DNA from: Obrimoposthia wandeli
Lineage: Eukaryota
Reading direction: 5' to 3'
NCBI GenBank assembly: GCA_977020255.1
Contig: CDROCS010000506.1
Coordinates: 3,162,001 to 3,226,000, forward strand
DNA: 64,000 bases
Shown: in pieces, positions 27,730 to 35,001 of the stretch
Layout: each line of letters opens with the position of its first letter
Numbering within the stretch: position 1 is the stretch's first letter
Position numbers and translations under genes: made by a program
Notes under the pieces: generated by a model
The model's database searches: none
What the model saw: the letters and a program-made list of their open reading frames with translations, nothing else
What the model was told of the DNA's origin: nothing

Positions 27730-28047
27730 TTATTCTTCGCCGTAATCTAAATCTTCGTCTTCTTCATTGATCACGCGAATGCCATCTTTTACCAAAATTT
27801 CGATATAGAAAGATGCGTCTTTGCTTAGGTCACCGCTATCAATTGATTTATTGATTTCTGATAGGTGAATAACCTGCGCTTCTTGTTCTGTTAAGCCATA
27901 CTTACAATCAAAGTCCCAGTAATCTACGCCTTTAGGTAGCGTTTTTTTACGCTCTCTTTTGATGTATTTTCTGATTTCGCTTTTGATAGATTCAATTTGG
28001 CGAGCTGGAACGATTTTTGGGTGGTTCAATACAAACGTTTTTTTCAT
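27730..28047 (-). CDS. DUF6172-family protein
   Basis: MKKTF..HPK, RKYIKRERKK.LP.GVDYWDFDCKYG. Confidence 0.75.
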   Translation of the reverse strand: MKKTFVLNHPKIVPARQIESIKSEIRKYIKRERKKTLPKGVDYWDFDCKYGLTEQEAQVIHLSEINKSIDSGDLSKDASFYIEILVKDGIRVINEEDEDLDYGEE

Positions 28048-33542: not shown

Positions 33543-33715
33543 GCGTACTCCTTAATACATTTAATTTTACTTATGTCCATTATGGCTAATTACCTTCAAA
33601 TAAGAGAATGCAGAATAGTATCAAATATTTAATGTGTCAAAGGGGGAATGGATAAGGGTGCTCATTATTTTATATATTAGCGCTTATTTAATTTTATATC
33701 ATTTATTTTCGTTAA

Positions 33716-33745
33716 TTTAAGGGCAAATCAATAATGGTGTACTAT
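33716..33745 (+). promoter_or_regulatory. Candidate sigma70 promoter for the + strand repeat RNA
   Basis: TACTAT -10 at 33740-33745, ending ~10 nt before the start of the closing stem; only a weak -35 (tttaag/ttaagg). Confidence 0.4.
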
Positions 33746-33803
33746 ATTTGTAATTAGGTCGACGGATATTATATACCAACTACCTTCTGCGATATGTAAG
33801 TGA

Positions 33804-34424
33804 GTGTAAGTGAAGAACGTACTATGGCAGATACGTGTAAGTGTAGACGAATAACGTATGTGACAGATGCGTGTAAGTGAAAAAGAAAGTGTAAATGAAG
33901 ACGAATAGCGTGCGTGAAAGGTGCGTGTAAGTGAAAAAGAAAGTGTAGATGAAGACGAATAGCGTGCGTGAAAGGTGCGTGTAAGTGAAAAAGAAAGTGT
34001 AGATGAAGACGAATAGCGTGCGTGAAAGGTGCGTGTAAGTGAAAAAGAAAGTGTAAATGAAGACGAATAGCGTGCGTGAAAGGTGCGTGTAAGTGAAAAA
34101 GAAAGTGTAAATGAAGACGAATAGCGTGCGTGAAAGGTGCGTGTAAGTGAAAAAGAAAGTGTAAATGAAGACGAATAGCGTATGCCAAAGATACGTGTAA
34201 GTGAAAAAGAAAGTGTAAACGAAGACGAATAACGTGCGTGAAAGGTACGTGTAAGTGAAAAAGAAAGTGTAAACGAAGACGAATAGCGTATGCCAAAGAT
34301 ACGTGTAAGTGAAAAAGAAAGTGTAAATGAAGACGAATAGCGTATGCCAAAGATACGTGTAAGTGAAAAAGAAAGTGTAAATGAAGACGAATAGCGTATG
34401 CCAAAGATACGTGTAAGTGAAAAA
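33804..34424 (+). repeat. 54-bp tandem repeat: 10 full units (33871-34410), two shorter 5' units and a 3' partial
   Basis: gtgtaagtgaaaaag recurs at 33871, 33925, 33979, 34033, 34087, 34141, 34195, 34249, 34303, 34357 and 34411. Confidence 0.97.
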
Positions 34425-34529
34425 GTAAGTAAGGAAGTTAGTAAGTGAAGAAAGTAAGTAAAGTAAGTAAGAAAAGTATTGCGAAGATAGAAGTATATAT
34501 TTCAGTCGACCTTCTTTTCCCATATATGT

Positions 34530-34558
34530 AAGTCAGGCTAACAACCTGACTTTTTTTT
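34530..34558 (+). terminator. + strand Rho-independent terminator after the repeat array
   Basis: aagtcagg-ctaacaa-cctgactt with a T8 run; no U tract in the opposite direction. Confidence 0.85.
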
Positions 34559-34773
34559 GTCTTAAATTCCTGTCAATGATGCCTTCCAGTTTAATATCCA
34601 CAATCTAACACTTACAATAATGCCAATAAACGCGTGTAGATGTTTAATTCTATTGTTGAATAAGTATGATGTTTTGGAATGAAAATACGAAGGAGTGTAT
34701 GCAGAGGAGGGGAATAATGCCCCGATATTAAAACTTTATCTAGTTAAAATATCGGGAATTGGTATTGATGTAA

Positions 34774-35001
34774 TTAGCTATTAACTAGCATATCAATAAA
34801 GTTACGGCGTTCTTTTACTGTTGCAAGTTGAGCTATTTTCTCACCTTGTGAATCTGTAAAAGCTACTCGGTTTTTGTGAACTGAAATCGAGTGTACCGGT
34901 TGTTTAATTTGGATCTGTGTACCATTAAAAATAATAGTCATAATAAAACTCACTATAAAGGCGTAGCTTAACGCTATCGCATAATTTGTAATAAGCTTCA
35001 T
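34774..35001 (-). CDS. 75-aa membrane-anchored hypothetical protein
   Basis: N-terminal TM helix; downstream hairpin cccgatatt/aatatcggg near 34720-34756. Confidence 0.6.
   Translation of the reverse strand: MKLITNYAIALSYAFIVSFIMTIIFNGTQIQIKQPVHSISVHKNRVAFTDSQGEKIAQLATVKERRNFIDMLVNS

Follow-up and report, generated by a model that had tools for sequence, protein, structure and literature searches.

A very abundant, repeat-built non-coding RNA from one branch of Moritella, with a suggested role in binding an unknown partner

A tandem array of short hairpins and purine-rich linkers lies between two minus-strand genes in a 64,000-nucleotide window (contig CDROCS010000506.1, positions 3,162,001 to 3,226,000, of the Obrimoposthia wandeli assembly GCA_977020255.1), and raises the question of whether such an array can be a gene in its own right and, if so, what it might do. 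A preliminary description made from the sequence alone proposed a novel RNA of about 800 nt, comprising twelve covarying hairpins on GUAAG purine linkers, enclosed by a helix between its two ends and followed by its own terminator, that would act as a sponge or scaffold in the manner of CsrB/RsmY and CrcZ. Our analysis confirms the structural observation and supports the existence of a new plus-strand RNA, whereas the sponge or scaffold function remains an inference.

The elements listed in the preliminary description are present in the sequence, and are collected with our refinements in the table below. Tandem Repeats Finder recovers the array with 94% matches between units, and the 35-nt linker occurs 10 times with at most one mismatch, against 0 expected from shuffled sequence. 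Eleven hairpins carry exactly the stem variants described previously, each folding as 6 bp with a 7-nt loop at -4.2 to -6.2 kcal/mol. The closing helix is found in both the minimum free energy and centroid folds, and forms 31 bp at -32.8 kcal/mol in isolation. The terminator is the only terminator-like site between 33300 and 35400, and there is no plus-strand ORF of 40 aa or more between 33632 and 35369. The flanking genes are an MlaE-family permease, the first gene of an mlaE-F-D-C-A-like operon, and a 75-aa ORF with no Pfam match, both on the minus strand, with a HAD hydrolase following on the plus strand. The folding energy of the whole molecule is uninformative (z = -1.44 on the plus strand and -2.29 on the minus strand), and the case for structure rests on comparison between lineages instead.

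Positions of the features of the RNA gene and its immediate context within the 64,000-nt window
Feature	Position	Strand	Description
Divergent promoter of the mlaE-F-D-C-A-like operon (context only)	33612..33640	-	TTGACA-17-TATTCT
AT-rich UP-like tract and weak -35-like hexamer (promoter role inferred)	33690..33725	+	Tract at 33690-33719; AGGGCA at 33720-33725
-10 box	33743..33748	+	TATATT, 7 nt upstream of the mapped 5' end; overlaps the previously proposed TACTAT at 33740-33745
RNA 5' end (likely transcription start)	33756	+	A of AGGUCGAC; previously placed at 33752
5' arm of closing duplex	33756..33795	+	Pairs with 34476-34512
Loose first hairpin	33817..33836	+	ACGUAC...AUACGU; 5 pairs plus one C-A mismatch
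54-nt x 11.0 tandem array	33835..34430	+	19-nt hairpins starting at 33854, 33908, 33962, 34016, 34070, 34124, 34178, 34232, 34286, 34340 and 34394; stems GCGUGC/GUGCGU x5, GCGUAU/AUACGU x4, ACGUGC/GUACGU x1, ACGUAU/AUGCGU x1; 35-nt purine linkers beginning with GUAAGUG
GUAAG-rich microsatellite-like tail	34413..34478	+	(GUAA)n / (AGUAAGUAA)n, repeat periods 4 and 13; contains the conserved block GUAAGGAAGUUAGUAAGUG
3' arm of closing duplex	34476..34512	+	Pairs with 33756-33795
Predominant 3' end of the abundant RNA	34522	+	Previously placed at 34558
Intrinsic terminator	34530..34558	+	8-bp stem, 7-nt loop, U8 tail; hairpin at 34530-34552

At least 14 marine metatranscriptome runs from 8 studies contain the sequence, with 28-40% of the sampled words of 33560-34700. 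In six RNA data sets (X1, X5, X6, X8, X10 and X17) assembled contigs are confined to approximately 33749-34522, or 34570 at the furthest, at summed depths of 10^2-10^6, with essentially nothing on mlaE and a depth of 9 or less on the right flank, where the only signal among the first four runs examined was in X5. In X5, 28,675 of 857,259 contigs lay on the element. By contrast, a DNA-like run (X15) is flat at 20-50 across the whole region and serves as a control. The runs were found because they contain this sequence, and contig depths are summed over variants and repeats and are therefore a poor measure of expression, although the contrast with the flanking genes is qualitative and reproducible.

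Contigs carry no read direction, and the assignment of strand rests on a small number of observations, all of which point to the plus strand. A contig in X1 carries what appears to be the SMART template-switch oligo tail, GTATCAACGCAGAGTACATGGG, immediately before the mapped 5' end and in plus orientation, as is the signature of an RNA 5' end, and RNA coverage begins at 33749-33756 in four runs. Plus-sense sequence runs into read-2 adapter at 34522 in X8 and at 33780 in X6. The closing duplex and terminator contain 16 G.U cells across lineages that would be A-C mismatches on the other strand, and the terminator U-tail is on the plus strand. Most molecules end 10 nt past the duplex, upstream of the terminator hairpin, with an X5 piece ending at the same position as the X8 contig, and summed depth in X5 falls from 367,413 (bin 34458-34538) to 29 (bin 34539-34619). 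This suggests 3' trimming of a primary transcript back to the protected duplex, although a capture bias may produce the same picture. One 179-nt X1 contig (depth 228) joins 34495 to 33749, going back 747 nt, and differs from the window at 8 of 73 positions in its 5' part; it could be a reverse-transcriptase template-switch chimera of a very abundant RNA, a tandem arrangement in a related strain, or a circular form.

To establish which features of the RNA are maintained, we searched for the element in other genomes. Among GTDB representative genomes the repeat pattern occurs only in Moritella dasanensis ArB 0140, at two contig ends that are the two sides of this same locus, and a scan of metagenome and viral contigs for three closely spaced GTAAGTG motifs found no wider family. 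We then used MlaE homologues to fetch syntenic loci, numbered here with the prefix L, and found the element in the same place and orientation in five Moritella lineages. The window type (L011-L013, 99% MlaE identity) has the same 54-nt units in different order and number, and the L268 type (L266, L268 and L269, 93%) has 54-nt units with diverged closing arms. The L003 type (L003-L010, L025, L267 and L270, 91-93%) has 5-7 irregularly spaced hairpins and no high-identity array, the partial L014 locus (86%) has (GUAAGUGAA)n, and the L015 type (L015-L017, 81%) has (GUGUAA)n and a single clear hairpin. The element is absent or vestigial in L018-L020 (79%), L022-L024 (81%) and L021, whereas the mlaE promoter block is conserved in every syntenic locus, including those that lack the RNA.

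Across these lineages the frame of the gene is conserved to a degree that its interior is not. The -10 box is kept as TATATT (L003, L268), TAGACT (L015) and TATAAT (L014), 7 nt (6 nt in L014) before the A of AGGUCGRC or AGUCGGC, and a hexamer AG(G/C)GCA or GAGGCA keeps a 17-18 nt distance from it in the L003 and L015 lineages. Every complete lineage has a closing duplex of 29-33 bp at -31 to -36 kcal/mol, whose middle part differs in sequence between lineages, as well as the terminator, in which one stem pair reads U-A, U-G or C-G and another G-C or A-U. In the alignable part 179 of 186 cells pair, and six pairs change on both sides, two of them in the terminator. Support from the hairpins is more modest. 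Over 18 distinct hairpin sequences 91.7% of cells pair, with U-A, U-G and C-G at position 4 and U-A, U-G, C-G and A-U at position 6, and the covariation score exceeds 495 of 500 shuffles; however, only 2 of 6 pairs change on both sides, and units related by duplication are not independent events. Most loops could add one more pair (U.G, C.G or U.A) after a 1-nt bulge, which would leave a GNRA tetraloop (GAAA, GACA, GCAA or GGCA) or CAAA.

The interior feature shared by all lineages is the number of GUAAG(U) motifs, of which they carry 9-22 against 1-2 expected. GUAAG occurs 21, 21, 22, 18, 14 and 10 times per RNA, compared with 0.9-2.3 expected from composition, in unrelated repeat backgrounds and with 56 distinct flanks, over which the extended consensus is W-GUAAGU-R-A. 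The preliminary description had emphasized the 54-nt unit and twelve hairpins, but this unit occurs only in the window and L268 lineages, GUAAG spacing is irregular in L003 and 6 nt in L015, and relatives have 7, 5 or 1 hairpin. The tail likewise differs in length in M. dasanensis, L011 and L268, while its conserved block is kept in L003 and partly in L015. GUAAGU is also the eukaryotic 5' splice-site consensus, UGUAAG is complementary to a tRNA-Val(UAC)-type anticodon loop and several hairpin loops look like anticodon loops, although there is no supporting evidence for any of these resemblances.

Comparison with described RNAs gave no match. A covariance-model search against Rfam 15 returned no hit at gathering score in the whole window, and only chance hits over the element (GAIT, a snoRNA and the L20 leader) at E up to 10; there was no similarity in the plasmid and phage collections, and no description of this RNA in the searchable literature, including PMC4462113. 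Like the CsrB/RsmX-Y-Z RNAs, it is an abundant stand-alone transcript with its own promoter and intrinsic terminator, many small hairpins and about 10-20 copies of a short motif whose number varies. However, the motif is GUAAGU in single-stranded linkers and not (A)GGA in loops, with only 2 GGA (2 ANGGA) in 803 nt, none in the 54-nt units and 3-5 in relatives. A long closing duplex is not a Csr/Rsm feature, and the only match to a GacA/UvrY box (TGTAAG-N6-CTTACA) within 2 mismatches in the 64-kb window is at 27889, against 3.5 expected by chance. The A-rich motif AANAANAA, which recalls CrcZ/CrcY, is present once per unit in the window type (10 copies) and 9 times in L011, but is absent from L003, L004 and L015 and occurs once in L017, so that the CrcZ/Hfq analogy does not hold across the family. 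ToxI-type antitoxin arrays share precise head-to-tail repeats followed by a terminator, but here no toxin gene follows and unit size and sequence are not conserved. The IMES RNAs likewise appear to be far more abundant than neighboring mRNAs in marine metatranscriptomes without an assigned function, but their Rfam models do not match, and here the organism and locus are known and the architecture is repeat-based. We propose a Moritella GUAAGU-repeat RNA family, defined by the -10 box 7 nt before AGGUCGRC, the closing duplex of about 30 bp, at least 9 GUAAGU in a pyrimidine-poor interior, the intrinsic terminator, and a position upstream of and divergent from the mlaE-like gene. The window, L011, L268, L003, L004, L267, L015 and L017 conform to this definition, and the partial loci L012-L014, L025, L266, L269 and L270 agree as far as they reach.

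Taken together, the interval from 33756 to about 34522 (primary transcript to 34558) is a stand-alone plus-strand gene for a highly abundant, stable RNA, a conclusion we hold with high confidence, as we do, to a slightly lesser degree, its non-coding nature. It exists as one locus in M. dasanensis and one in the window, and among the loci examined is confined to a subclade of Moritella. Its ends are locked together by an imperfect duplex of about 30 bp, and its interior is a pyrimidine-poor single strand with about 20 copies of W-GUAAGU-R-A, interrupted by small hairpins of the form NCGYRY, 7-nt loop, RYRCGU, that is rebuilt quickly by tandem expansion and contraction. The one interior property kept through complete sequence turnover is a high number of one short single-stranded motif, which is the logic of CsrB/RsmZ and CrcZ. 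It is plausible, therefore, that the RNA acts as a multivalent decoy holding many copies of one factor that recognizes GUAAGU or purine-rich single strands, most likely an RNA-binding protein. In this model, the number of sites would be tuned by repeat copy number, and the closing duplex would protect both ends and explain the accumulation. CsrA is an unlikely partner, given the missing GGA motifs. We give this reading as a whole a probability of roughly 0.5; its decoy component is the more tentative part, as there is no binding, genetic or phenotypic evidence and no partner has been identified.

Among the alternatives, a transcribed minisatellite with little or no function is unlikely but deserves the most weight. 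Copy number and unit order differ between near-identical strains (the window versus L011, L012 and M. dasanensis, and L003 versus L004), and rapid turnover of the interior together with loss in sister lineages would also fit a weakly constrained or dispensable RNA that accumulates only because its ends are protected. Conversely, promoter spacing, duplex and terminator are kept by compensatory changes across lineages whose interiors cannot be aligned, GUAAGU density is kept at 10-20 times expectation in independent repeat types, and making so much of a useless RNA would be costly. It is also possible, though improbable, that the RNA sponges other RNAs, with its GUAAGU sites pairing with ACUUAC in an sRNA seed, a tRNA loop or an mRNA leader, as sponge RNAs for bacterial sRNAs are known. 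The motifs lie in purine-only stretches that cannot self-pair, the centroid fold leaves the interior open, the RNA itself contains no ACUUAC and motif number is conserved. However, a 6-nt site is short for stable pairing, the flanks vary, and no complementary partner was found or could be searched for, the window having no tRNA and no known sRNA. A precursor cut at every unit into small RNAs is similarly doubtful. The head-to-tail units each carry a hairpin and only short contigs were recovered, although a repeat would break assembly anyway; against this, no toxin or nuclease gene follows the terminator, with no plus-strand ORF of 40 aa or more between 34558 and 35369 and the HAD hydrolase 800 nt away, and the conserved closing duplex argues that the full-length molecule is the functional form.

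A protein-coding explanation is very unlikely. The 54-nt period is 18 codons, the minus-strand frames stay open for 222-248 codons, gene callers annotated them as genes of 239 aa and 160 aa in two metagenome records (L011 and L268), and each window-type unit with an ATG has a 36-nt, 11-codon ORF (MKTNSVRERCV). However, all three minus-strand frames are open at once, as a plus strand with about 10% C and about 22% U would produce, and these ORFs have no Pfam match and shrink to at most 149 and 76 codons in L003 and L015, so that the antisense gene calls are artefacts. The mini-ORFs are found only in the window type, are missing from L003, L015 and L267, and have ACG in place of ATG in two window units. 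Moreover, the 3' repeat tract differs in length between strains, stem changes preserve pairing rather than amino acids, and the RNA 5' end is plus-sense. Least likely is a DNA-level element, such as a MITE-like insertion, an iteron or decoy array, or a repeat regulating the divergent mla-like operon. Inverted repeats do flank the array, which lies about 150 bp from the mlaE promoter, and TGTAAG appears to be the half-site of the GacA/UvrY box. Nevertheless, the element is single-copy per genome with no plasmid or phage match, its arms diverge but covary through G.U pairs that mean nothing at the DNA level, no palindromic GacA box within 2 mismatches lies nearer than 27889, and the RNA is massively abundant.

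It remains possible, although we consider it more doubtful than not, that this RNA is the titrating arm of an undescribed post-transcriptional control system, in which an unknown Moritella protein, or an RNA, would recognize GUAAGU and be held by what may be the most abundant non-ribosomal transcript of the cell. The number of sites, 9 to 22, would then be reset between strains by expansion and contraction of the repeats, making it a heritable, fast-evolving dosage dial for a global regulator.

Few multivalent decoy RNAs are known in bacteria (the Csr/Rsm, CrcZ and 6S types), and each one revealed a global regulator. The RNA described here has the same overall design but a different motif and is expressed at extraordinary levels, making it a direct handle for finding its partner in a cultivable psychrophile. 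As gene callers annotate its antisense strand as a protein, and as it can take up a visible share of a marine metatranscriptome, it is worth a family model. It is also a clear natural case of a structured RNA whose frame of promoter, closing duplex and terminator is held by compensatory change while its interior is rebuilt by tandem duplication, which bears on how new non-coding RNAs arise and how their number of binding sites evolves.

The abundant RNA species ends near 34522, upstream of the terminator hairpin, with only a trace of coverage reaching 34570, which suggests 3' trimming back to the closing duplex. One contig from the metatranscriptome run X1, with a depth of 228, joins the 3' arm region back to a point 7 nt upstream of the RNA start, a step back of 747, and its 5' part differs from the window at 8 of 73 positions. 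It is possible that this contig represents a reverse-transcriptase template-switch chimera, a tandem gene copy in a relative, or a circular or permuted form.

In the 86% lineage, represented by locus L014, a separate tandem repeat of about 20 bp (tcgacatagatatttaattt, 4-5 copies) lies between mlaE and the RNA gene, and this repeat is absent from the window. In two further loci, L011 and L268, public gene calls lie antisense to the RNA gene; however, these appear to be artefacts of the pyrimidine-poor repeat. In the 81% lineage, the mlaA-like gene of locus L015 is called in two pieces (224 aa and 82 aa), possibly reflecting a frameshift or an assembly error.

Positions of features at and around the RNA gene in the window and in the Moritella loci L003, L011, L014, L015 and L268
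Locus	Position	Strand	Feature
Window	34495 joined to 33749		Junction in the X1 metatranscriptome contig
Window	34522-34558		Segment from near the end of the abundant RNA species through the terminator
Window; L003 and L011	31500-33542 (window)	- (window)	Neighboring mla operon
Window	34774-35001	-	75-aa ORF
L014	1-421	read on -	Tandem repeat of about 20 bp, upstream of mlaE
L011	4055-4774	antisense to the RNA gene	Public gene call, 239 aa
L268	462-944	antisense to the RNA gene	Public gene call, 160 aa
L015	6700-7597		mlaA-like gene called in two pieces

The 75-aa ORF has a hydrophobic N-terminus and no Pfam match, is called as 55, 68, or 75 aa in other records, and is conserved next to the locus in all Moritella lineages, including those without the RNA. 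The neighboring operon, in the window as well as in loci L003 and L011, has the gene order mlaE-mlaF-mlaD-mlaC-mlaA as opposed to the E. coli order mlaFEDCB. Moreover, outside Moritella its MlaE is closest (66-73% identity) to proteins from Desulfobacterales and Thermodesulfobacteriota MAGs, which may point to horizontal acquisition.
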